From Oopsacas minuta (taxonomy: Eukaryota; Animalia; Porifera): DNA of 64,000 nucleotides. Shown here in pieces: positions 1-18,127 of this stretch. Every line of letters begins with the position of its first letter. Within the stretch, counting starts at the first letter, position 1. Below the pieces are notes generated by a model. That model did not search any database. It was not told the DNA's origin and was given only the letters and a program-made list of their open reading frames with translations. Location of the stretch: positions 62,001-126,000 of the forward strand of contig JAKMXF010000319.1 of NCBI GenBank assembly GCA_024704765.1, read 5' to 3'. The translations under genes were made by a program, and so were the position numbers.

Positions 1-3000
1 TTAGGAGTTTCTAGAGTTAATTTGCAACCGTTCTGTAGGATAGAGACTGGGAACTTTTCACAAGGCATGCTTGATAGCCATAATCTGAAGTCTTTATTAA
101 CCTAGATAAGTAATAAAGTAACACTAAATGTATAATGCATATCTGTTGTCTGTATCAAAATTCGGCACCGATTTGCGTATCGGAAATGATAAACATCTAA
201 AGTCTCAATATCGAGATTTTGAAAAGGATCAAAAATATGGAAAATATTGCGAAAATGTTGAAAATATCAAAAATTCTCGAAATAGAAAATAATCAAATTT
301 TCGATATTTTCCGACGAGACATTTTCATATATTCGGTATTTCTCTATATTTCCCGAAATTTTTCCTATATTTAGAAATATCGAAGCGATATTAATAATCG
401 CGTAATTTCCCAATACATTGTATCGTATCTGAATTTTTAACCGATACAATCTTTACGAAACCTTGAAAAGTAAACTTACCTTATCTTCATCTATCTGCTT
501 AATTATTCGCTCTAGTGTAGGCATCCAGCTGGGACAAAGATGACAATCTTGCAAGAACACCCACTTCCCATTCTCCATTCCCTCTTTCATCTTCTTAGCC
601 GCCATCGGTCCTTGTCCCTGCCCCAGAGACACGCACAGTAGTTTATCTGTGAACTTCATTTCTGCAGCAAACCTATACAACTCAGCTGATGGGTCAGTAC
701 CCGAAGATAGTATAAATATGAGAGGAGAGGTCGGAGTAGAGTCTTTGAATACAAGTCTCAGGTCAGATGTTTGAGGGTCTATACGAGAATACACATTCTC
801 ATAAATGGAGAAACATATACAATTGAATGGAATACGTGTATAAAGCAATAAATAATACCAAATATATATTAGGTTAAATCCATGCATTTTCGCCTTTTCG
901 GTCCATTTCTATTCCTAAATGTAATTGGGCCAGATTCCTACTATACCAAATATTATGAGTCGAATTCCAGCGTCTCACTAAGATTAACAATTAACTCACC
1001 AACAAAACGCTGTCCTACATTATCAGCTACATAGCATTGTATAGCATCTGTAAGTTTATCGGGTCTGATACAACGAAGTAACAGAAGCTTCTGAAATGAA
1101 TTCAAATGTGACCATTTTCCAGGGAGCTCCTCTTTATGAGGTGTGTTGCTATCGAATATGTGTTTGAAGTCTTTAGACGTTTCAACGAACGCACTTGCAA
1201 AGGTTGAAAACTTACCTAAACTCTAGAAAAACATCTAAACCCATTAATAAAAAGGACAATGTAAACAAAGTGTGAAAATATGATTAATCATATGATAAGT
1301 CTGCAAATTAGTAACTTTCAGGCCTTGAAAATATCAAATTCGGACTCTACGCAGCCAATTTCCCCTGACAACTTGTCGAAACATAATCTCTAGCATGATT
1401 TTGAATTTTACACAGAAAAGTGTGAAAATATAATTAATCACCAAAAAGGTGTGAAAATTCATACCCGAGGTGCATATTTCCGATGGCTAGACTCTAACAT
1501 ACCTGAATACTAAGTATTTCATTCCAAGCACGTCCATTAACCCAGTCAGGAGCAGGATTAGGAATTTGTTTACTAATAACACCTCCTCCTGAGATGAAGT
1601 ACTCCAATTCATCTGGACATATGATACCTTCGTTCATCAGGATTCGTGAGGTCAGTAAGAATGAGAATAAAAGTTTGTGCTTTTCAAACAGAGATCTATT
1701 AAATCAAAAGTTTAAATATTGTGAAGCAAGTATATAGGCTATGGAAATATCGTTATTGGTTTCCCCAAAAAATATCAAAATATCGGAATTTTCAATATTG
1801 AGTTTCCGATATTTCGCGATGTTTTCAGATATTTTTGATAATTTCATTATAATATCGATATATGTTGGCACGATTAATTAACGCTAGTATTTGTATGGTT
1901 TTATTTCTGGCTAATTGGCTCGATTGACTGGTGGCTCTATTACGCGGAGCCTACTGTATTAAATATTTTATATTTTCTTCCTGAACTCTTGATATTTTCA
2001 ATATAAAAGCCGGCGTAACATCCAGTAGAAATTACCTGCAAACATTGGAGTATAAATTGTAAGTTAAGTATTCGTTGATTTGAGCAATCCTATCAGCAAC
2101 AACTCCTCTCTTCTCAGCACCAGCTAAACATGATAAGAAAATCCTGAAGAACCAATCGATTGAGTACTGATACATGGGATCAATAGTAACCAAATCTTTA
2201 ACACAGAAGAATAGGATACGAGCTCGTACTAACACGGGTGTGTAGAGACTGTGGGCTGTAGTAATAGCTGTATCATTCTTATCAGATATCGCTACCTGTA
2301 GACAGGAATTAAATATAATAAAGAAATACAAAGGTTTGGCAGCAATAGATCGGAATTAAAGATATCGAAAAAGTTTAGGGACTCCGAAAAATGCTATACC
2401 GTTTTACTGTTTCCTGCAATTTCCCAGTTTGTGGAGGTATTTTTGCATGAGAATTACCAAAAATTATCGAAAAATATTGAAAAAATCGAAAAAATATAAA
2501 ACACCTATAATGTCAAATTTTGTAAATTTTCGATATTTCCCTTTCTACAACCACATTTGGTTGACTTCTCTACATTGGCGAAAATTGCATAAATACAGTG
2601 TCTGCCTCTAAACCTTGGGGGTTCAGACTCCCCCAAGGTACCCAAGCTTTGCGGTTATGCACTCTATCAATTACTTACATTTTCCATAATTTCCTCATAC
2701 TTCATCTTACTGCCCTGCAGTACATCTATCAGCTCTCCATCATCTATAATATCTCCTACAATATTACTGAGCTTGTACAAAACTCTATCTTCAATCTCTT
2801 TTAGCTCTTTCTTCAGCTTAGCCTTGTCCTCTGCTAGACAATTCCTAGTATTCTCTATATCTGGTAACTCTTTTCTTAAAAGGAATTTAAACAGCTGTTC
2901 TTCTAGTCTCCTTGGGGTGAGAGAGGAGTTGATGACGGCTACTTCCTGTGTATAGCGAGGGTTTGGTAGCTTAGTAGTGATATATAAACGGAAATCTTCA

Positions 3001-6000
3001 TGGTATGGGATTATCTTGTCACCTAATCACAAACTTTGATTCAATAGAATTCAGATATTGGACATGGAAATTTTCCGATTGGCGTATCGATATCTGTTAT
3101 ATTTACCCAGCGGTTCCCAATCTTGTTCCATGGACCACTTGGTAGCCTACCAACGACGGCAGGGGGTCCATAGTATCTCAAAATAAGTAAGAAACTCAAT
3201 GGGGGGTCTACAGAATGTGTAAAAATTGGTATAAGGGTCCTTGGGTGAAAGAAGTAGGCAACCGCTCAATATCGCTATTTGCCAAACTTTGATTCAATGA
3301 TACGAAAATACAAAAACTCACCGAGTTTTATAACTACACTGCCAGATTGTATGAACGTCTTTCGAGTGAGGATACAGCCTAAGACAGGGTCAAGTTCTTC
3401 CCCAACATTTTCCAGGAGACACGGCTTACCAAACTGTACTGCATTCTCTAATTTCCTCAAATACTCTTTGTCAGTCAACTTCACAACTAAAAGAGAGCAA
3501 AGACTTAGTATTACTGATAAATCAGAAATGAAAAAAATATCAAAATTTCAAAATTGCGGATTTCAAATAAATATCGAAAATAGCACGAAAAGATCGAAAT
3601 TGAATTTTGGATATTTTCCGAGATTTCTAAATTTTCGGGATTTTCCCTATCTTTTTGATCTTTTCTTATGTTTAGAAATATCGAAGAAATATCGAAATTC
3701 GCCAAACCTTGAAGAGAGTTCTCTCTCTCAAATGATTTGATCCAGTGGTTAGCTTGGCCCTGTGGATCGACGAAGAGCGGCCAAAGTTTGGAAAACTTCA
3801 TAATCACTGCATTATCTACTGATATATTATCTCGTGTTAGATCTGACAATCGACATTCCTTAGCCATTACGTCACAATAGAGTATGTTGACTAGAGATGA
3901 GTTATCAGAATAAGCAACACCTCGTTCTGTAAATTTAGATTTCCAGGTCTAGAAGGATATAAATGCGAAATTTGACAACTCACGAAACGATAGCAAGCGA
4001 AGTGCTAGAGAAGTAATATCAGTATGACGTAATCAATTACCTGTGAAAGAGAATGTCTGAAGGTATCAGTGAAAGAACCAAAATAAGCAACAGCTCCAGA
4101 TGCTAACAACACATCTCCAATTATATTCTCTAACTTTTTATCCAAACAAGATATTAAGCATTTCCATCTAGCAGTTTCATCTTGTATCAATCTCATCAGC
4201 TCTTCTACTCTCTGCGCTTTCCCCCCCTCTGTCTGAAGGCCAGATATGATTTCCCCTGTAGATACAAGCTTACCCAACCCTCCTTTGACATGGTTCCTCT
4301 CAGCAACCAACTCACTCATTTTACCGGAAAATATCCCTTCAAATAACCTCAAAAACTCTATATAACTGACATGAGTCAACTCTGCCTTATACTCAACAGA
4401 TGCTTGCAATACTGCATGATACATGTCTACACAAACTTCCACCAAACCATCAGTGCATCGAACTTCAGAAATACTTTGTAGCCGTGTGTTTGCTACGGAT
4501 CTCAACGCCTCACGAGACCACTCTGAAAACCAGTCAATTGTACAACAGTTGACAAGATTAGGGAACTTCCTGACAAGACTCCTGAACAGATCAACCTCTG
4601 GATTCATGCATATAACAAAATGACAATTATTCCGTACTCGCTTGATGTATTCTCCAAACATATCCGTCTTCACTACAACTTTCATAGAGTTCTCTATCAC
4701 AGTCATATCCTGTGGTGAATATAGCCCAGGAATATCTCCAGTACACAGCAAGTTATTCAGATATTCGATAAATAGTTCATTAGCTCTTTCAGGAACAGAG
4801 AAAAGAAGTATAGATGCCATATTCTCTATCCCAGACCGCATCAATACTGATTTAACAGCCTCCCTCCATTCCTTCACTCCATACAATCTACTCATTTCTA
4901 TCTGTACACAAGCATATCCGTTTATGTGAGAAGCTAGTCGTGTAAGGGACTGTCTGCCCGTCCCGGACGTTCCCAGCAGGAGAGCATTACCTTGAGGCAT
5001 TGAGATTATACGAGATATACGGCACACATGCTGTATTGTATCTCTGAAGAAGACTAGGTCTAATTTGGATGTGTTAACTCCGTTATAGTCATCTAAGTAC
5101 TCCTGTAGAACAGCTGGTAGTTTATCGTGATCTCGTATCTCAGTGTAAGTCTTGTTGTCTTTATTGATACATCCAAACATCAGGTTATCTACAGGGTTAG
5201 AGCTGATAACGAGTACAATTGTAATCAAAAGTTCTATAAGAGTGTAATAGTATTTATATACCGTAAACTGGGGCTACTTTGGCCCACTGGGTTTGCTTTA
5301 GCCCAAATATCAAAGCTTCAAAGAAACTAGATTGGATTCAGCATTGTACTTGAAAATGACTTGCCAAATTTTTAACGAATTTTCAAATATCGATAGACAA
5401 TTTCGAACACAAATACAATATCTATTCGATGCGTAAGGCAAATTTCAATAATTGGGCTAAAGCAAACCCAGTGGGCCAAAGTAGCCCCAGTTTATGGTAT
5501 TGAAATTATAATTGTAATCACCTGATATAAATCCGCTCCACCCTTGATCTGAGACATGCTCCTTCATTTTATCACCCAACCAATCTTTATCTTCATTACA
5601 TACAAGTCTATCTTGAAACACACGACAACACTCATGATACCACAGCTTAACCACATCCTGAATGGATTCTATCTTATCAGGTGACGCCATGATAATGCCA
5701 TGGAAGACTCTACTCAAATCCCGCAGGTTAAATGCGTAGTGACATTTAGCTGGAGTAGGCAATAGCTGAGTTAAAATTGTAGAGAATATGGAGATTGTAC
5801 AGCTTGTCAATTTATCCTTCAGTTCATCTCTGTTTATTTGTAGGTTAGGACATACATTAAGCCAAGCTCCTAGAATAGAGGAGAAAATAGTAGCTTTACA
5901 GCTGTCATCTAGTTCTGGGAATGACAAGAAGTTGAAGTGTCTGAGTAGTCTGTGGGTGAGAGTGTTCCGCCCTCCTCCTGGCGGGCCCATAGCACAAATA

Positions 6001-9000
6001 AAGTTAATATCTAGAATATTCTTGAATACTCCTACAGCTTTCATATCGTACCAACCACCATGGTCCATCCATTGTCTAATTAGCTCAATAGGAGGCTGAG
6101 CTCCGTATCTCTCCTTCTCAGGTAGATTGAGGTCATCGATAAAGATGATAGATTTCTTTCCTGTAAATATATTGCATAAACAAGGTTTGAAAATATCGAA
6201 ATATCTGGAAATGTTGGAAAAATATTGAAATATCAAAAATTACACTCTACTCTGACAGTTAAGTCTATAATTTTGTTTAGATGACTAATAATTGGAGGCA
6301 CTAAGTGTATTTGGGTTAAATTCTACATTTTATAGTGCCTCCAATAACAAGAGGCCTCTCTAAACAAATTTATTAATAGGGTAAGCTGTCGCCACAGATT
6401 GTAATTTTAGATTTTTTGCTCGCTTTTCCTCAATCTTATAATTTCTCAATTTTTGAAAATTTTGTCATAATCACTCGACTATGGTGATTTTTCGATATTT
6501 TTGATATCGGAGATTTTCCAACAAATCGATATTTGAAATGCTTGGGGTACCCACAGGCCACGTGTACCTAGAGGTGGTCCAGAAACTGTTACACTTTTCC
6601 TCTCCAATTTGCTATCAATGAAATCTACTGTTTGATTAACAGAAGTATGAGCTGAGAAGTTAACTGAATGAGAGAGATAATCTACTGGCATTTTTCGAAG
6701 AGTATCCATGGCGTATTGTGTCTTTCCGGTACCAGTATGTCCCACACATAACACTGGGTTATTGTTAGCCAATAGCAGCTGTATCATGTAGCTAAATCTT
6801 ATCGTGTCTTGTGTCGGTACTAGGATATCGGAATATCTCATGTATGGATCAACCTACAGTGGAAACTCGTTAATACGAACACGAACAAAAAATTTGTTCA
6901 CTTCATCCGGAAATTAGTATTATGTATAGTATGTTTCAATGTAGAAATTACAATTACAAATACATTGATTTTTGGTATAGGTGGTGGTATATTCGACCTG
7001 GCTCGGACAAATTCGAGTGTTGGTCAAAAATTCACATCTATAACGAATTGCCGAGTTAAATCAGAGGCAAAAGTACCAAAATAAATCCTAGGCATTAAGT
7101 GTCGAGTTAAATTCCAGCATGAAGTGCTGAGTATATGACTCCGCGTAGCGCAGCCACCTAGCAAGCGAAGCACGCTAGTTAATATAATTTTACAAACAAT
7201 TCTATATATAACGCACTCAGCTTCTAACGAAATGAAACTGAGGTTCTAAGCACTTCGTTATGCCTAGAGTATACTGTAAGTACTTACCTTATAAGGAGAT
7301 AGATCATGTGTCCAAGTAACCCATCTAACAGGTCCTTCCCTGACAATAACCCATCCTTCATTAACTTTCTCCATCAAACTAGTGCCTGCATCATCTAATC
7401 TATAATCATAGACTAATCCTTCAGGGGGGAAGATCAACATGAACTCTTCTCCTTTCATTATTCGCCTCACATACTTGTCGAATAATACACGTCCAATTCT
7501 GTCACAAGTAGCTCCGATTGTCCATATTAAAGAGAATATGAACCAAGATTCTATCAGATCTCCTAAGATAGAAACTTTGCCCTCACTGATAACTTCCCCT
7601 ATAAAGAATGTGAAGGAATCGTAATAAGTATACGTGGAATCCAATCTGGTATGACGTAATTGCAAGTATTTGTGACGAACGATACTTAACTCGCGATAAA
7701 TACTCTTCTACACTGAGTCTAGATTTACCTTTTTTAATGAGAAATGGTTTGAACAAACAATCCAACATTTTCAGAAAACTAGCCACGAGATTAGCATCAA
7801 CAGTAGTTACTATCTCTTTAATCTGTGTACGTACAAACACGATACTAGGTTTCAGAAATTTACATATCAACTTGTTTAGAGCTGGCATATATGGATGTAT
7901 ATTTCGTAGTGATTTATCATTGTTTATCTTCTGAATCCAAGAATCTATGAGTGGATCTATACCCATGGGTTCTAACCAGACTACTCCACATCTACTCACT
8001 GTCGCTGGGCTTGCAACCTCTAAGTCCTGAGTTTCAAATAAGATAGACATATCGGCTGTTAGTGGTATAATTTCTCCGTTAGCTAGACACAGTATCTTAT
8101 TGTCATCTAATACTGTATTCAAACTCTCAATCCAGATTGCATCAACTGGTCCATCAAACACAAACCTAAGGAAAACTGTCAAAAATCTCGAAAATTGTAT
8201 TACACTCTACGGTCACAGAATGTGTTGAAATTGGGATAGAGGAATGTTAGGAAGCACTGCAGGGCGGTACCATGAATTCTAACCTGAAATCTTATTCTAT
8301 AATAGGCAATAGGGTCTACCCCCTTGGACTGCCACTGAACAGCTGGAAGAATTATTAATTCATAAATTAGTCAACTAAAAACAAACCATTTCTTGATTGA
8401 GGTGTCAACTGCTGTACTCTGTTTCATCAGATTTGGCAACAACCCGTCTCTCCATTCATTTGTGAATACGTTATACTCTCCGTATAGATCACTCAAAGTG
8501 ACGGTTTTTGGATTTAAACAATAAGTTACGACCTCCTATAGTATAATATAGTAATAATATGTTTGTATGTCCAGAATTGATTGAAGAAACTGGAAGACCT
8601 CCAGGGCTGATTTTGGCATACAGGGGTATTTTGGGCCTGGCTCGGACAAGTTCGAGTCTTGGACGAAAATTCGCATATAAGACGAAATTATGACGCCATT
8701 GTCACCCTTTTGGGTTTTCAAAAAATCACATTAGTAACCACTGCACAGCCAATATACATGATAGAAGTTAGAAATTTGAATCACAGGTACCCCACAATGT
8801 GACATGTCCTGACGTCATGATTCTGGCCAAATGCAAATCATGCGATTATTACGTCATCTTGATTGTACAAAAATTCCAAATTTTCTAAATTTCGAAAAAA
8901 TTCAGAATTTCTTAATACCCGAGGCACGAAGTGCCGAGATTCCTAAACAAAAGCGACATAGCATCTCCAGTGTCACCACAGAATGCATTGAATGTAATTG

Positions 9001-12000
9001 AATGTAATTGGATGGAGCATGGATAATAAAATGTTTAATACTTAAGCTAACCTGGAGCACTAAGCTGTCGCGAGCGACCTAGCAAGCAAAGCTCGCTAGT
9101 TGTAAATAAACCTAACTCAACCCTGCTATACAATAGACATAAATGTATGCATACCTGATATAGCTGTCCATTTTGTGATGTACGTCCCTTGAGATTACTC
9201 AATGCAGCTGCTAGTACTTGATAACACTTTGTCTTAGCAGAAGCAGTCTCACCCACCAACACAACTCCATGTCTCAATAATGTAATCTCATACAGCTGTA
9301 TACACTTATATACGAATTCATCAACATCCTGAAGTCCTTGTTTAAGAGCGCATTTCCTGACCTCAGATTCAAGCTCTCTGCAAATAGCTGATTCATCATT
9401 GACACCAGGGAATATATCTGATAATAAGCTGTTGAATAACTTCAAGTCGTCTTTCAAGAATTTGGGTGTGTTAGACGCTCTTAATGCTCTCAGAAGAATT
9501 TGATCCTCCTTCATTCTGGGGTGTGATCGCCTGATATCACCGGCTAATTGGAGGACTGACTTCACAGCTCTCATACCAAAGTCATAATGACACTACAATA
9601 GATGAGTATATAATACAATATTGCCAGATCATGAACAGAGTTGCTAGACTGAGCTTAGACAGGAATTTAGAATGAACCATAGGTATCAACACTAAATTTG
9701 TATTGTAGTCTATGGGATGGGATCCACAGTGTTAGAATATTGGTACACGGGGTGAAAAGGAAGAAATTCATTCACGACAAATATCTTACCTGTCTACTCA
9801 GCTGTTCTGAAGATAACTTGAAAGTTGTTACAATCTTTTTGGCTAGCAGATTAGCCTTAGAGAATCCAAAAGAGTAGAGAAGTACCTCAGCGATTAAAGC
9901 GTAGTCTGGAATCATCATGGCAATAGGACGGAACAGAGCTTTCAAATTATCCGGTAACTCAGTTCTTCCTTTATATCCCGGGTTCATTGTTAAGAAAAAA
10001 CCACACGAATTCTTCAGAGACAATTCTGTATTCGCAAAGCAAAATCTATAAAATACAACGGACGGTCAGATTCTATTATCTACAGTAGAGTCTCCTAAAA
10101 CGGGCCCCGAGAAGTGGACAATCCCTCTACAACGGACAAACCTCCTGGAATGGAATGAATTAGCAATCATATATGTAATAAGCAGTCTCCGAGAAGAGGA
10201 CAACTTCCTAAAACAGACAAAAGCGATGTCCCTAACATGTCCGTTATTCGGAGACTCTAATGTACTACATATAGATCCCTTTTCATTGATATGTTTGTAT
10301 GTCCAGAATTGGTTGAAGAAACTGGAAGACCCCAATGGCTGATTCTTTGCATATTTTTGGGACTGGTTCGGACACGCTGGAGTCTTGGACAAATTATGAC
10401 GTAATTATTGATTCAGTATTAACTTGGCAAATTGTAATGCTGCTTTGTCATATGCAAATTTAACCCAACCATATGATATTTCACGAAAAACTTGATTATT
10501 TAGACTAAAGAAAACTAATTATGCCAAAGTAGCCAATTTATACGCGTACGTGCGGTGTTTGATATCATAGCAAAATCCAAGGCACGAAGTGTCGAGCATA
10601 ATATCCCACCGCGGAGCGCCATAGCAAGCGTTACGCACGAACTTATCTAGCTCCTGCATCTTAGAATTCTGTATGATTGTGATCTGTTGAGCAACAACAG
10701 ACATCACTTCTATATCAATTCTGTTAAATTCATCAAAACAAGACCAAACGCCAGCACTCGCGATCCCTGTCAAAATCTTCGCCATTCCCAAATAGTCTAA
10801 CTGATCAGAACAGTTAATGACAATGCATTGTATTCCAAGAGCTTTCGCAAGATCCTTGACTGTTTCAGTTTTTCCAGTGCCAGCTGGCCCACAAGGACTA
10901 CCTCCTAACTTCAAATGCATTGCACCAGTCAGTGATATATAACATCTACATAAGAATAACAAAACATAAGATTGAATGGTAGGATCAGTTTTGAATGTGG
11001 CAGGGAAGGTTTTACAAATATCAATACAGTGGGTCGAGGAGATCAGAAGCGGACAATTAGAGAGGACCCACTGTATCACTAAATCTCCTATATCGATAAG
11101 ATACATCAGGGAAAAAGCTTGCTTCTTTCTTTCTTACTTTTGATTTAATGATTTTCCTTAGGTTCAGAGCATTAAAGGAGCGCTCCATTATTGAAGGAGC
11201 GACTCACTGGAGCGAGCTCCAATTTAATTGGAACTACAAAATTCTTTGATATTCTCCATAAAATTCAGTATTGTTGCTATAAAAAGTGGATGCTGATACA
11301 CTTTTGTATAATTCACAATTTATTGAATTGGTTCGACGTTGCAACTTAGTACAAATCTAATGGAACTCTGAAAGCATGAAAAGTAGCACTATTGGAGCGT
11401 GCTCCATTTTTCTGTATGGAGAGCCGGAGTGAACTCCTTTTTCATGGCAAGAGCGCGGTCCAAAGAATGAGGAGTGCTTAATACTCTGCTTAAACATAAT
11501 GTCAAACAAATTACCTATCTGTAAGTGGAGTTATAACAAGTCTCGCACTATTTCCTAAGTATTCATATCCATATCTGAACTCGGCATTAATAATCCGTAA
11601 GATGAGGTCATCTTCCCAGTAGCTACGTAACTGACAAATCCACTCAAAATCTGTGATATCTCTAACTCCCTTTTGACGTAAATTCTCTACAATATCCCTA
11701 GCGTGTACTTCAATAGGAATCAGGGCTGTCAGGGTAGATCTTTGTAAGAGAGTTGGTTTGCCTCGTACCAGCTGAATTAAGTCTTCAAGCTGTGCGGTCA
11801 GCTGTTTACAATACTTGTCTAGAGAATTTTTCTTGATTGCATTAGCTACTTGTATAGTCCAGTAAGCCTGACAGCCAGCAAGCACCACCTATGTGTATGT
11901 GTGTAAAAGGAAGTATGATAAGGCCCTGTTAATGAGAAACTTGTCTAAGACCACATGATGTCCATATAAGGATGTGTGCGGGCGGAATTTCATTATCATT

Positions 12001-13997
12001 ATTTTATGACGTCATCATAAAGTGGTCAATGAATGTATTACAAAATATTTACCGAGTGGACGATCTAGCAAGCCAAGCGCTCAAGTACTAAAACAATTCT
12101 CTCTCATCAACTCGAAGAACGGGAAGTATCAAATAACACTGACAATAGCGATTGTATTGACATCTAATGAACACTATGCTTCAATTTACCTGACCAGGCC
12201 AACTGGTTACCCACTCATTACGTGGAGTTTTGTTGTAGCTTTCCAACGCATGTTTGATATTTTCCCTAATTGATAACTTCATAACTCTTTCCAACTCTTT
12301 CATCCAAACTTCCACGCCGCCTTTGGGGTAGAAAGCTTCACAAAGAGGAACCTTTTCCCCTTCCTTCGACCACATTTCAGTGATACGGAAATCCTTTTGA
12401 TACGTAACTTTAGCAATATCGAACATTTTACTGAGTTGTACAGAGACAGGGGAATTTGTCTTAGAGAGGATATGAAGAAGATCATCATTTGATAAGAAGT
12501 AGAATCTAGGAAATGCTCGTCTCTTGGTCTCTAAGTATTCGTTTAGACCTTTTTCTATCTACAGCAAACGATAATAAATAATAAAGTAATCTCCTCTACC
12601 TCTACTGCGAGGCTACATATGTGTCCCGATTTCGCGGAGTTGACTGTATACGAGAACCATTTTACAGGGAATTGTTCTTTTATTCGATAGCTCTTATAAC
12701 CGGTGTTCGTGTCGTTATATAAGCGATACACACTGTAGAACAGAAATATACAACTCACTTGTTCTAGAAGTGTAATACATTCCTTCAAACTATCAAGCAG
12801 TTTATAATCAGGACACAACTGTATGATTTTGGGATTAGCTTTAGCAGATTTCATTATTGCATTCCAAATACGCTCGGTATCCTTGTACTGTTTTGTCTCC
12901 AATGGTAATTGTTTCTTGATGTCATCTGAGGTGAATATAGGTTCAAGATAGAGACATTTTCTCTGGCACAATTGCCAGTTCTCTATAACTTCTTGTAGAA
13001 GAGACAGTTTCTTTTCCCAGTTAGTTATTCGGGACTGGAACATCTCGCTGTAAGGAGAGGAGGACATTGATTGGAGCATAGCAATGTTATCTTGTAAGAG
13101 TTGTACAACATTTTCTCCAGGAATGAGCAAGACAGTATCTATAGAAGAATAGAAGAGTAAAGATCTAACATACAATAGAATCCGCAGACCCGATTAACGG
13201 TGGCTCTATTAAGCAGAGTATAATGTTAGTATTTGCCAAGTAAGTAATCAGATGACGTCATTCTTCTATTGAGATGCAGTGCAACCTCGTATCGGAAAAA
13301 TAAGTAAATTATCGAAAATTTTATTGGGAAAATAACGAAAATTCGGTCCACTAACGGAAATATGGAAAAAATATCGAAAATTTAATAGCGGAAATCAACA
13401 TTGAAAATTTCGATATTTTTCATTTCCGACACCGGTGTATAGTAAGATACGGGTATTTACCTGTGTTTTTGTGTTTGATAGTCTCAAAAAGCTTCAGCTT
13501 CCATTCCTGCTCCATCATATCTAATGCATGTTCTATTGAGAACTGCTTTGATGACATATCTGCAATTTGTGGATCAGATTAGTATAGCTAATATGTATTT
13601 TAGAAATAATGTTAAAACATAGATTCGTCAATTCAAATAGATCTCAATGTATGTACAAATCGGATTTCCCATAGAGTTATTGTTGTTTCTGAGATCCAAG
13701 CAAATTCTAAGGTTAGGACGAGCTGTGCAATTAGGATAATGGTATTATGAAACTAGGAAATGTGTTTTAACTTAGGAAGTCGATCAACAAACAAAGAAAT
13801 TCACCATGTAGCCTGTGTATAGTTCGTCCCCATTATCCTTAATATATATATTCAATGAACGAGGCATGCGCCTAATGTTAAATAAATATTACACGCTTTT
13901 TAGTAGTAGGTAAGAATTCTAAAATTAGGCTTTTTGAAATTATTATTACATTATTAAAGAACTCACACTTGAGACTGCTCCTGGGGTGTCTTGACAT
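1..13997 (-). CDS. DNAH1: Axonemal dynein heavy chain, DNAH1-like (linker, AAA1-AAA6), stalk/MTBD-less and apparently tail-less; 3' end beyond window start
   Basis: Hand-built exons (minus): 13967-13997 and 13657-13722 (both tentative), 13461-13559, 12759-13138, 12190-12558, 11515-11888, 10643-10945, 9790-10045, 9155-9592, 8387-8535, 7729-8165, 7288-7598, 6568-6853, 5522-6160, 4041-5188, 3708-3948, 3322-3486, 2679-3022, 2036-2295, 1503-1695, 1000-1222, 480-778, 1-101. All have GT-AG boundaries with compatible phases and no internal stop, giving about 2370 aa in the window. Motifs: [91 protein letters not shown]. Closest recalled match is DNAH1. Confidence 0.9.
156..465. mobile_element. AT-rich MITE family with internal ATATCGAAA repeats (intronic copy)
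   Basis: Degenerate ATATCGAAA/TTTCGATAT repeats with a CAAGGTTT(G/C)-type terminus (GAAACCTTG at 457-465). Related copies at ~1740-1870, 2330-2617, 3498-3711, 6181-6544 and 13290-13435, all in dynein introns. Confidence 0.55.
3108..3267. mobile_element. hAT-Charlie-like MITE (CAGCGGTTCCCAA ends)
   Basis: Starts CAGCGGTTCCCAA and has a degenerate inverted end. Related copies at ~14745-14850, 26090-26262, 51389-51580, 53328-53479, 57820-57889 and 59546-59680 share GGTTCCCAACC / GGTTGGGAAC ends and GGTCCA(T/C) motifs. Confidence 0.55.
3498..3711. mobile_element. ATATCGAAA-family element occupying almost all of a dynein intron
   Basis: Flanked by the direct repeat AAGAGAG (3491-3497 and 3712-3718). 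The right terminus CAAACCTTG overlaps the splice donor. Confidence 0.6.
5261..5497. mobile_element. TA-target MITE with ~45-bp TIRs (Tc1/mariner/pogo-type)
   Basis: TIR CCGTAAACTGGGGCTACTTTGGCCCACTGGGTTTGCTTTAGCCCAA with a near-perfect inverted copy at the right end and TA on both flanks. A second copy lies in opposite orientation at 55583-56070. Confidence 0.85.
8559..8940 (+). mobile_element. Non-autonomous Helitron/Helentron-like element
   Basis: The 5' block TGTTTGTATGTCCAGAATT-G-TTGAAGAAACTGGAAGACC is shared with ~10289-10400, with partial similarity at ~6990-7030. The 3' GGCACGAAGTGCC GAA-loop hairpin and the CTAGCAAGCGAAGCACGCTAGT-type end recur at ~3990, 7160, 9075, 10580-10640, 12063 and (reverse) 61105. 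Confidence 0.45.
10083..10262. mobile_element. TA-target pogo/Tigger-like MITE
   Basis: TIR CAGTAGAGTCTCC matches 12/13 and TA lies on both flanks. The internal GACAATCCCTCTACAACGGACAAACCTCCTGGAA is repeated at ~46667, and the other end matches ~46535-46590. Confidence 0.7.
11165..11488. mobile_element. MITE with CAGAGCATTAA termini (hAT-like)
   Basis: TIR CAGAG(C/T)ATTAA with internal GGAGCG/CGCTCC repeats. A clearly homologous copy lies at 44179-44530. Confidence 0.7.
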
Positions 13998-14980: not shown

Positions 14981-16012
14981 TTAAAGACTAGAAATTTCAA
15001 CATTTGGATCATTGGAATATTGTTTATCTCTCTGTCTTGCTTCTACCAAAGCTCTTAAAGTATTGGATAGTTTCGTTTCACCATTATTGAAAATTTCAAT
15101 TGGAACCCATTTTACTCTAAGAGAGTTTAAATGCGGTTTTTCACCGCGAACTATGACAGAAATATCCTCTTTATTAATGGGCTTTTTATTCGAAATTATT
15201 TTTTGCTTTTCTTTGGGTATCTTTTGCAAGCCATTCTCTACCAAGTTACCTTTTTTACTAATCTTTCTTTTGGAAATAACGTAAGAATACATTCCAGCGA
15301 ATATTATAAGAACACTAGTTATGACAACCAAGATGAGTAGTACAGCACCGACTACAATCAAGATAGTCATAGTTATATTTAACTGATGATTAGGTAATAC
15401 ATGTGTTGTAAGTGTTGTAGAATTGGTTGCAGTAGCTTTGAATGTAGTAAAAGTAGTTGTAGTGGTAGTGAAAGTAGAAGTAGTGGTAGTGAAAGTAGAA
15501 GTATTCGTAGGTTCGGTTGTAGCATCAGTGTTGCAACCTAGATTTTCTTGTGTAGAATCATTTAACACACTCTGGGCACATATTTGCTGTAATTCACAGG
15601 TGTCGGAAGCTGCTTGTGCTATCATATAAAACCCAAATTGCAGACATGTATTGTTAACAGGAGAAATGAAATAGTAAGATCTGCCGAATGAATAAACTCC
15701 CGTTGATAATTGAAATTGACTTGCCTGCGAGAGAGCCATTGAACTAGTAGGATTCATAAAATTGCAATTTCGCATATCTTCTTCAGTAGATACGCTATAT
15801 AATACGTCGATAATCGCCGGGGGTTTCTGTATTAGTCGTATTATACTCGACTGTCTGATATTACAAAGATCATTATTTGGTGGTAAAATTCTTGAATTCA
15901 GACTATCTTTAAAAACACAAAAATCTGGTTGCCATATAACTTCATACTCACAAGATTGGTAAGTGGCAACAATAAAGCACATGAGGAATGTTAAACTGAG
16001 GAAATACCACAT
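14981..16012 (-). CDS. Ephrin-like (cupredoxin-fold) type I membrane protein
   Basis: 343-aa single-exon ORF with a signal peptide, ephrin-like motifs (EVIWQP; LYSVSTEEDMRNC; FGRSYYFISPVNNTCL), a Thr-rich stalk, a TM helix (ITMTILIVVGAVLLILVVITSVLIIFAG), and a basic tail ending ISSL. Confidence 0.6.
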   Translation of the reverse strand: MWYFLSLTFLMCFIVATYQSCEYEVIWQPDFCVFKDSLNSRILPPNNDLCNIRQSSIIRLIQKPPAIIDVLYSVSTEEDMRNCNFMNPTSSMALSQASQFQLSTGVYSFGRSYYFISPVNNTCLQFGFYMIAQAASDTCELQQICAQSVLNDSTQENLGCNTDATTEPTNTSTFTTTTSTFTTTTTTFTTFKATATNSTTLTTHVLPNHQLNITMTILIVVGAVLLILVVITSVLIIFAGMYSYVISKRKISKKGNLVENGLQKIPKEKQKIISNKKPINKEDISVIVRGEKPHLNSLRVKWVPIEIFNNGETKLSNTLRALVEARQRDKQYSNDPNVEISSL

Positions 16013-16755: not shown

Positions 16756-18127
16756 ATGGCTACAATTCAAACAGAACCAGATTCACCAGATAATCTATTA
16801 TACATACAGATTGATGGGTACAGAGGTTACAAGCAAGATATTCTAACACTAAAACTATCTAAACTAGAAAACAAATTTCTTATTTGCACTGAATGTCATG
16901 GAATAGCCAGAGAAGCCGTGTTATGTGAAGGTAAAACTATCTGCACATTATGTACAGCAGGGAAACCGCATGAACCGAATGATGACGTCAGGGAGTCAGT
17001 TAACGAACTGAATGTCATCTGTCCATTGAATTATCGGAGTTGTGAATGGAAGGGAGAATTACGACACGTGGACCAACACCTTCTACAATGTGATCACCTC
17101 TTAATACTCTGTAATCAGGAATGTAGCACTATGCTAACTCAATACGATTTGACAGAGCACATTACAAACAGTTGTCCTATGAGGAATATACCATGTGAGT
17201 TCTGTGAGGATATCTGTTTAGCTAAGAATATGAATGACCATTTAATAGAATGTCCAGCATATATATTGGATTGTCCACAAGGATGTATGGAGAGAGTGAG
17301 AAGAGATAACATGAATGAACACACAGAAATACACTGCGAAATGAAGAAGGAACCTTGTCCATATTATGAATTTGGGTGCAAGACAAACTCTTTAACTAAA
17401 AGAGATGTACAAACACATCAACAAGAATATGTTGTGTCTCATCAGCAATGTTTGTATCAAAAATAACAAACAGCTGAAGATCGAAACAGCTGGGATTAAT
17501 GGGAGAGCGGATCATTTAGAGAAAGTATACAATGAACAGAAGGAAAGAATTGTCAATCTTGAGAAAGAAATCACGAAACACAACAAGGATGTTAACAAAC
17601 TGAAAACTGGATTAGAAAACCAAGAAAAATTGAACAAAGATTTACAAATTTTTGTAGAAAAGCAAAATGTTGAAATTAGATATATAAGAACAATTATGAA
17701 ACTACAGATTAATCAAGAGTTAACATCGGAAAATATAGAATTCTTCGATAAATTTGACTGGGATATAACTCATTTTTGGGATCGTATCATTACAGATCAA
17801 AAGATCGAAAGTCCTATATTCCAATTATACAATCATAATCTACAGAGTCAAGCCACATTTAAGAATCGCGGTTTTTCCAATGAATTACACATAAGTATAA
17901 GGTGTTTGGCATATAAAGCTATTCCACAGAAAAATCAATTCTGTTATTATATAGTTCAACTTATCAACAGAATTGAGGAAAATAAGTTAATTGTACAGAA
18001 AGGAAAAATAGATAGAGTCATTACAGGGGATTACACACTTATTACAATTGTGAGGACATATCGTTTTCATCTCTTCATTCAAAACGATCCTTACTTAATT
18101 CGAATACAATTAATACCAACACTATAA
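16756..18127 (+). pseudogene. TRAF-like gene, copy 1 (degenerate RING, TRAF zinc fingers, coiled coil, MATH-like domain), frameshifted
   Basis: ORFs 16756-17466 and 17405-18127. A net 11-nt deletion near 17460 relative to copy 2 shifts the frame. C-x2-C / CPLNYRSCEWKGEL / CPYYEFGC fingers are present, and the C-terminus FIQNDPYLIRIQL is MATH-like. Confidence 0.75.

Follow-up and report, generated by a model that had tools for sequence, protein, structure and literature searches.

In the textbook description, a dynein consists of a tail, a ring and a stalk that act as one machine. Midasin (Rea1) and RNF213 are dynein-like rings, with six AAA domains in a single chain, that act on substrates other than microtubules. 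Here we describe a gene in a 64,000-nucleotide stretch of the genome of the sponge Oopsacas minuta (assembly GCA_024704765.1, contig JAKMXF010000319.1, positions 62,001–126,000; the whole stretch is called the window below). The gene is a paralogue of the dynein heavy chain DNAH1 (DHC8; Chlamydomonas DHC2, inner-arm dynein d) that has neither tail nor stalk and is under purifying selection beside the canonical gene. We saw no specific sequence relationship to midasin or RNF213, and the window gene lies inside the DNAH1 clade, so the likeness to those two proteins is one of functional analogy.

Both by sequence and by tree, the closest described relatives are DNAH1, DHC8 and Chlamydomonas DHC2, with which the gene shares the linker, AAA1–AAA6, the buttress and the C-terminal domain in the same order; with canonical sponge DNAH1 it further shares intron positions and the AAA2 P-loop GPTASAKT. 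Unlike DNAH1, it is devoid of the tail, the first third of the linker, the stalk and the microtubule-binding domain. It also differs from canonical DNAH1 in that the protein of its lineage evolves about four times faster and has a degenerate AAA4.

Class-12 dynein heavy chains have an aberrant stalk without a microtubule-binding site (Kollmar 2016, PMC5100056), and DNAHX is a non-motile dynein derived from an outer-arm chain, its AAA1 being dead and its stalk carrying insertions (preprint PMC11785096). Like the window gene, these are animal dynein heavy chains without normal microtubule binding by the stalk, and they are thought to be regulators or transport templates and not motors. Unlike the window gene, they are of outer-arm origin, have kept the tail, carry insertions or an aberrant stalk and have poorly conserved AAA1 motifs. 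Descent from an outer-arm alpha chain or from the orphan classes is not what the trees recover, as they place the gene in DNAH1, and the degenerate AAA1 that characterizes non-motile dyneins is not found in it, its AAA1 motifs being intact. DNHD1 (class-11, orphan), likewise a divergent dynein heavy chain, is presumed to act in cilia otherwise than as a motor, but it is full length, has disordered insertions, lacks the catalytic Walker B residues and is not derived from DNAH1 (PMC11785096). None of DNAHX, DNHD1 and the class-12 chains is DNAH1-derived, tail-less, stalk-excised or catalytically intact. Full-text searches of an incomplete literature collection returned no natural stalk-less dynein, and within that coverage they bear out the statement of an earlier note on this stretch that no natural DNAH1 derivative of this sort was known.

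The nearest experimental parallel comes from stalk mutants of yeast dynein, in which broken coupling between stalk and buttress leads to a microtubule-independent, and even hyperactive, ATPase (Niekamp et al. 2019, PMC6600642). In these mutants the half of the ring formed by AAA5s-AAA6-AAA1-AAA2L cycles on its own, whereas the AAA2s-AAA5L half needs the stalk (PMC6600642). The half that cycles by itself in the mutants is the best-conserved half in the window gene. The mutants differ from it in being insertions or deletions of a few residues, made in the laboratory in a yeast cytoplasmic dynein whose microtubule-binding domain is present; here a natural and full excision has affected an axonemal dynein.

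A DNAH1 paralogue without stalk or tail

The peptide to which the earlier note drew attention is encoded by a single exon (exon 13; Table 1) and is contained in the open frame 5228–4005. Its best matches among solved structures are DNAH1 chains (E-values of 2e-96 to 1.5e-91), with DNAH6 next (~1e-77). Each DNAH1 match falls into two pieces, residue 334 of the query being aligned to DNAH1 residue 2837 and residue 339 to residue 3102, with about 264 residues gone between them. A global alignment with seven full-length dyneins has a single gap, of 258 residues, which lies inside the stalk (MT) domain PF12777 of the reference and leaves the first ~26 and the last ~58 residues of that domain. What is missing between AAA4 and AAA5 is the coiled-coil stalk with the microtubule-binding domain (258–264 residues), and what remains is a hairpin stub. 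The earlier claim of an in-frame deletion of about 260 residues within one exon thus stands, as does the assignment of the gene to DNAH1.

AlphaFold2, run on exon 13 with a 24-row alignment (mean predicted local distance difference test [pLDDT] 84), places this hairpin on AAA4. A helix formed by residues 268–313 of the exon query is broken only at G314-G315-K316, from where a return helix runs over residues 317–346; the Gly-Gly turn proposed earlier to join the bases of the two stalk helices (CC1 and CC2) coincides with this predicted turn. Foldseek matches the exon model to AAA4 and the stalk base of solved dyneins with TM-scores of 0.79–0.85. The AAA5 buttress, which the earlier note had described as retained, is present at canonical length (Table 1).

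Contigs of three DNA runs span positions 4149–4888, 1500–5160 and 1500–5282, and thereby the junction at 4200–4260, with 0 differences from the window, and read depth at the junction equals that of the flanks. The runs are DNA, since their contigs carry introns, and they derive from the same sample as the assembly, so that independent support comes from the same architecture in four other assemblies. The exon is also present in a closely related organism (organism B; ~95 per cent identical), whose low-coverage contigs have no visible span of 4200–4260 and are neutral on the junction.

We modeled the whole gene by chaining tblastn anchors through GT-AG sites. Of the earlier description of 23 exons in frame and without stops, the continuous frame and the absence of stops held over 2341 codons, and the count was corrected to 21 exons in the window. 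AAA1–AAA6 are colinear with the references, AAA6 being only partly inside the window, and the last ~480–500 codons of this copy lie off the window, beyond its start. Apart from the stalk, the protein is colinear with canonical dyneins, with deletions of 11, 5, 8, 6 and 4 residues and one insertion of 18 residues. An orthologue on another contig (L003, see below) has AAA6, the lid and Dynein_C as far as its locus reaches.

At the other end, the start codon corresponds to about residue 1020–1130 of full-length references and to position ~137 of the 403 positions of the linker domain DHC_N2, the first third of which is missing from the window gene while the proximal two thirds are present. No dynein homology was found upstream of this ATG in the 1.4 kb that separate it from the next gene (14981–16012), and no tail homology in the 6.8 kb upstream of the orthologue on contig L006. 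In a more distant stalk-less relative (L008) the whole linker is present; the gene begins at the linker start, with the unrelated genes DAO, DSBA and Spt5 directly upstream. The N-terminal tail, with its A-tubule docking and light-chain binding, is thus missing from the upstream regions of all three. In the window an AG is located 2 nt before the ATG, after a conserved non-coding block (Table 1), and both block and AG are common to L004 and L006. Together they may be the branch site and 3' splice acceptor of an intron in the 5'-untranslated region, or an acceptor for spliced-leader trans-splicing. The latter is a candidate role for the AG because spliced-leader trans-splicing has been reported for a glass sponge (PMC10282587).

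Related stalk-less genes were found among metagenome contigs, which carry no taxonomic label and whose sponge origin rests on similarity. In an exhaustive profile-free search only P0001 (L001, ERZ25071281; 63–66 per cent identity) matched across the junction in one stretch, and all remaining matches were at most 42 per cent identical and came in two stretches. Word-based searches added P0151 (L002 and L006, ERZ25069837), P0152 (L003–L005, ERZ26869290 and ERZ23489137) and the more distant P0153 (L008 and L012, ERZ20067936), all of them stalk-less. The question raised earlier, whether relatives share the deletion, is thereby answered by at least four other assemblies with the stalk-less architecture. 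The stub varies in length, being longest in P0151 and P0152, shorter by 9 residues on the CC1 side in P0001 and by 12 on the CC2 side in the window; the stub thus kept shrinking independently.

Canonical proteins with a full CC1, microtubule-binding domain and CC2, encoded by genes with a tail region, were found as well (P0154, P0155, P0262 and P0270); they are 55–58 per cent identical to the stalk-less proteins. One of them, P0262, lies on two contigs of ERZ25069837, a sample from a sister species that also holds stalk-less P0151; coexistence with a full-length DNAH1, for which the earlier note had suggested a search of this genome, is thereby documented in the sister species. The two P0262 copies are haplotigs, as their proteins are identical at a synonymous distance of 0.007. 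Between the ERZ25069837 and BUSC20-1 samples, synonymous distances are 0.27 for the canonical and 0.33 for the stalk-less gene, and these matched values fit with the presence of both genes in both species. Two other sequences were set aside as references: P0023 proved to be DNAH7-like and was kept solely for Pfam coordinates, and P0002, considered as a sponge DNAH1, is DNAH6 from an unrelated NCBI genome.

In a tree reconstructed from 584 AAA3–AAA4 columns, all sponge sequences form one clade (100 per cent support) beside other animal DNAH1, and the gene falls in a clade with DNAH1/DHC2-type references. With 1944 shared sites as input, the tree gives the window lineage a long branch and joins L008 to the canonical genes (81 per cent support); forcing all stalk-less genes into one clade is rejected (approximately unbiased [AU] test, p = 0.011). 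Both the grouping of L008 and the rejection of a single clade could come from long-branch attraction. The end points of the deletion differ between L008 and the window lineage. Judged from these sequences, a single origin with progressive trimming and two independent origins may both be compatible with the trees. That the ring-only architecture, without tail or stalk, arose twice from DNAH1 in sponges, once in the window lineage and once in L008, is a possibility we entertain only tentatively.

Some 11 introns of the window gene sit where canonical sponge DNAH1 in L009 also has them (as read from tblastn match ends with one reference). This agreement means that the copy arose by duplication of genomic DNA; a processed retrocopy would fit the 5' truncation but is ruled out by the same introns. 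In the canonical gene the part that is missing here starts in the middle of an exon, crosses two introns and one whole exon, and ends in the next exon; from canonical-gene coordinates, the excised genomic DNA is estimated at ~0.85 kb. The gene thus goes back to a DNA-level duplication of DNAH1 and is missing the N-terminal ~1000–1130 residues, which comprise the tail and the first third of the linker. The stalk and the microtubule-binding domain were removed by an in-frame loss of the ~0.85 kb that left the helical hairpin, and purifying selection has since maintained the copy next to canonical DNAH1 in several species.

Constraint and possible function of the ring

The ratio of non-synonymous to synonymous divergence (dN/dS) is 0.21–0.33 in the six pairs formed by four copies of the window lineage (1180–2324 codons; synonymous distances of 0.33–0.73), with a bootstrap interval of 0.18–0.24 for the window copy against that of species 4. 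These values are not near 1, the value that the earlier note had taken to speak against a functional gene. Among canonical sponge DNAH1 genes dN/dS is ~0.03–0.10, and between L008 and canonical genes ~0.04–0.07; for the exon encoding AAA3 and AAA4 it is ~0.10 in canonical and 0.34 in stalk-less genes. By region, constraint is tightest in AAA1, AAA2 and the available part of AAA6 (0.15–0.26) and looser in AAA3, AAA4, the stub and AAA5 (0.2–0.38).

The catalytic sites follow a similar gradient. The Walker A and B motifs of AAA1, reported as intact in the earlier note, are so, as are those of AAA3 (Table 1), and the AAA1 Walker A motif is canonical in the window, in species 3 and in species 4 (the lineage contigs that reach AAA1) and in the slow-evolving stalk-less copy. 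We defined near-invariant columns as those conserved in at least 93 per cent of 44 canonical dyneins. The window protein keeps 62/64 such residues in AAA1, 27/27 in the AAA2 core, 15/16 in AAA3 and 17/17 in the AAA3 lid, that is, 121/124 over AAA1–AAA3, against 23/32 in AAA4 and 19/25 in AAA5. Overall, 217/243 (89 per cent) are kept, compared with a leave-one-out median of 97.6 per cent for canonical dyneins. In AAA4, in addition to the degenerate P-loop (Table 1), the Walker B region is altered (SVPE versus SDTQ in canonical dyneins), and two relatives have Asp in place of the P-loop Gly. The AAA2 P-loop (window 9230–9253) follows the pattern G-x-T-[AC]-S-[AG]-K-T, for example GPTASAKT, versus GPTGGGKT in most dyneins; this unusual form is common to all sponge DNAH1-type genes, canonical and stalk-less (L009, L011 and L008). 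In species 3 (L002, ~2190–2230), the four residues past the AAA1 Walker B motif read ILAM, versus RIDI in all other copies, which looks like a compensated local change.

The reading that we favor, at a probability of roughly 0.6, is that the product would be a microtubule-independent dynein-ring ATPase kept for a non-motor role. The non-walking functional ring ATPase suggested in the earlier note is backed, as far as sequences can tell, by the conserved architecture, the dN/dS values, the coexisting DNAH1 and the retention of AAA1–AAA3. The product would have ~2830 residues, made up of a linker stump, a six-AAA ring, a buttress and a C-terminal domain, and ATP binding and hydrolysis would persist at AAA1, with AAA3 intact. 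Microtubule sliding would not occur because neither binding through a stalk nor docking through a tail is possible. Hydrolysis should be independent of microtubules because, without a stalk, nothing couples microtubule binding to the ATPase; here we lean on the yeast stalk mutants, whose division of the ring the conservation pattern appears to mirror. Selection could then act on an AAA+ enzyme that works freely or with a partner, for instance in regulation, in assembly or transport, or in remodelling within flagellated cells.

Several points weigh against a kept ATPase. The dN/dS values are 3–8 times those of the canonical gene, indicating relaxed constraint. AAA4 motifs are degenerate in several species, as if this domain were decaying, and P-loops can be conserved for the sake of folding or of binding nucleotide and not for turnover. 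The distal third of the linker, which forms the tip of the lever, is gone, and the stub is without length constraint, as the window and P0001 have lost a further 12 and 9 residues of it, respectively, in independent events. The window copy is incomplete, with ~500 codons at its 3' end off the window. As for expression, the search for RNA runs returned only DNA runs (their contigs contain introns), and the junction peptide (120 residues) had no match among short open reading frames in any assembly.

Some of these points would suit a non-catalytic scaffold, for which ATP turnover would be irrelevant: the ring fold and nucleotide binding would serve only stability and binding, with the protein acting, for example, as decoy or template for other dynein heads or their assembly factors. 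Non-motile dyneins such as DNAHX and DNHD1 are known, overall constraint is relaxed and AAA4 is degenerate. The known non-motile dyneins, however, have lost the catalytic motifs of AAA1, whereas here both Walker motifs and nearly all near-invariant AAA1 residues are kept, and dN/dS is lowest in AAA1 and AAA2, which makes a scaffold unlikely.

We regard as improbable that the gene is a relic on its way to loss, a partial duplicate under residual or no constraint whose open reading frame survives by inertia. Its dN/dS above that of the canonical gene, the window copy's further deletions (of 8, 6, 3 and 12 residues) and its AAA4, the most degenerate of all, and the failure to detect RNA (neither in the runs found, all DNA, nor as a short-frame match) are what one would expect of such a relic. 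Yet the frame is open over 2341 codons, and long exons are open in four relatives at synonymous distances of 0.33–0.73, while simulated neutral change at 0.1 substitutions per site introduced 31 stops on average, and at least 17, into 2341 codons. The window's own branch has a dN/dS of ~0.21 (computed from pairwise distances). The 25 listed differences in the exon of organism B comprise 12 synonymous and 13 non-synonymous changes, against a ratio of ~1:3 under neutrality.

A split motor, in which the tail, the microtubule-binding module or both are encoded as separate polypeptides and reassemble with the ring, has a precedent in the split dynein heavy-chain genes of Basidiomycota (PMC5100056). 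For the window gene it is very improbable: the arms of the stub are short, unequal between species and independently trimmed, which leaves neither a conserved coiled-coil registry nor a docking end in evidence, and the distal linker that would carry the tail is absent. Finally, a collapse or mis-join of the assembly at 4200–4260 is scarcely credible, given that the contigs of three runs cross the junction with 0 differences at flat depth and that the identical join recurs in four assemblies from other samples.

Introns and surroundings of the gene

Table 1. Features of the stalk-less dynein gene in the window (positions in the window; all on the minus strand)
Feature	Position	Strand	Evidence or remark
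Stalk-less, tail-less DNAH1 paralogue	1..13557	-	21 exons, all introns GT-AG, 2341 codons, no stop
Conserved non-coding block, 42 nt	13571..13612	-	no other upstream stretch is conserved with L006 and L004; 83–85 per cent
Exon 1, start codon conserved (MSSK...)	13461..13557	-	same ATG and peptide in L004 and L006
AAA1 Walker A, GPAGTGKT	10867..10890	-	same as in canonical dyneins
AAA1 Walker B, FDEFNR	10720..10737	-	intact
AAA3 Walker A, GHTGTGKT	6719..6742	-	intact
AAA3 Walker B, FIDDLN	6143-6126	-	intact
Intron 12, only in this species, very high-copy repeat inside	5189..5521	-	word depth, frames of relatives
Exon 13: AAA4, stalk stub, first AAA5 helices	4041..5188	-	alignments, AlphaFold2, Foldseek
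AAA4 P-loop, degenerate, GTSGTGRQS	4947..4973	-	motif comparison
CC1 remnant (GGLGKL...GLQTE), 19 residues	4227..4283	-	aligns to first turns of DNAH1 CC1; predicted continuation of last AAA4 helix
Gly-Gly at deletion junction, predicted hairpin turn	4221..4226	-	AlphaFold2
CC2 remnant (KAQRVEEL...ETARW)	4164..4220	-	aligns from DNAH1 3102 on; three relatives have 12 more residues
AAA5 buttress hairpin, canonical length	2706..2906	-	ungapped against canonical sponge DNAH1

Word depth in intron 12 reaches 61568, compared with ~215 in its flanks, and at its site the frame is continuous in P0001, P0151, P0152, P0153 and canonical P0154; a mobile element seems to have given rise to this intron. 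Introns 14 (3487–3707) and 8 (8166–8386) are likewise species-specific, the frame of the relatives being continuous at both sites, and the depth of intron 14 in the three DNA runs is that of ordinary single-copy sequence. An intron at residue 507/508 was also considered as species-specific and was ruled out, as relatives have a short intron at the same place. Moderate to high repeats occur at 3076–3272, 6228–6424 and 6819–7212, in introns positioned as in relatives; the last of these repeats is very abundant in organism B too.

Introns of the stalk-less dynein of relatives contain whole genes, namely an opposite-strand gene with an OTU domain (L002, 15205–18924), a 356-residue multi-pass membrane open reading frame (L003, 12016–13083) and a MatE transporter (L008, 4103–5662). 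The L005 contig (8492 bp) is palindromic, with the same dynein exons in both orientations, and is probably an artefact of metagenome assembly. In the window, the upstream neighbor of the dynein gene (14981–16012, minus strand) encodes a single-pass membrane protein of 343 residues, part of which is Thr-rich. Farther out (16756–18127, plus strand) lie Cys/His-rich, zinc-finger-like open reading frames followed by a coiled coil. Neither locus shows synteny with the relatives.

Implications

If the reading as a kept ATPase is right, a dynein ring and its main ATP site have long been kept after the loss of both ends of the motor, and the ring would have a selectable activity of its own. The gene would amount to a natural test of dynein allostery, in which the half of the ring that runs by itself is conserved and AAA4 and AAA5, which serve the stalk, are relaxed. 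It may also be of practical use in structural and enzymological studies, as a compact and naturally stable dynein ring that is free of the stalk. To DNAHX and DNHD1 among the non-motile dyneins it would add a type with an apparently live catalytic site, and the coexisting canonical parent allows a paired comparison of expression, localization and partners in the flagellated cells of sponges. Two origins, if true, would point to convergent selection for a free dynein ATPase ring and to a new functional class of dynein-derived AAA+ enzymes that work without microtubules.

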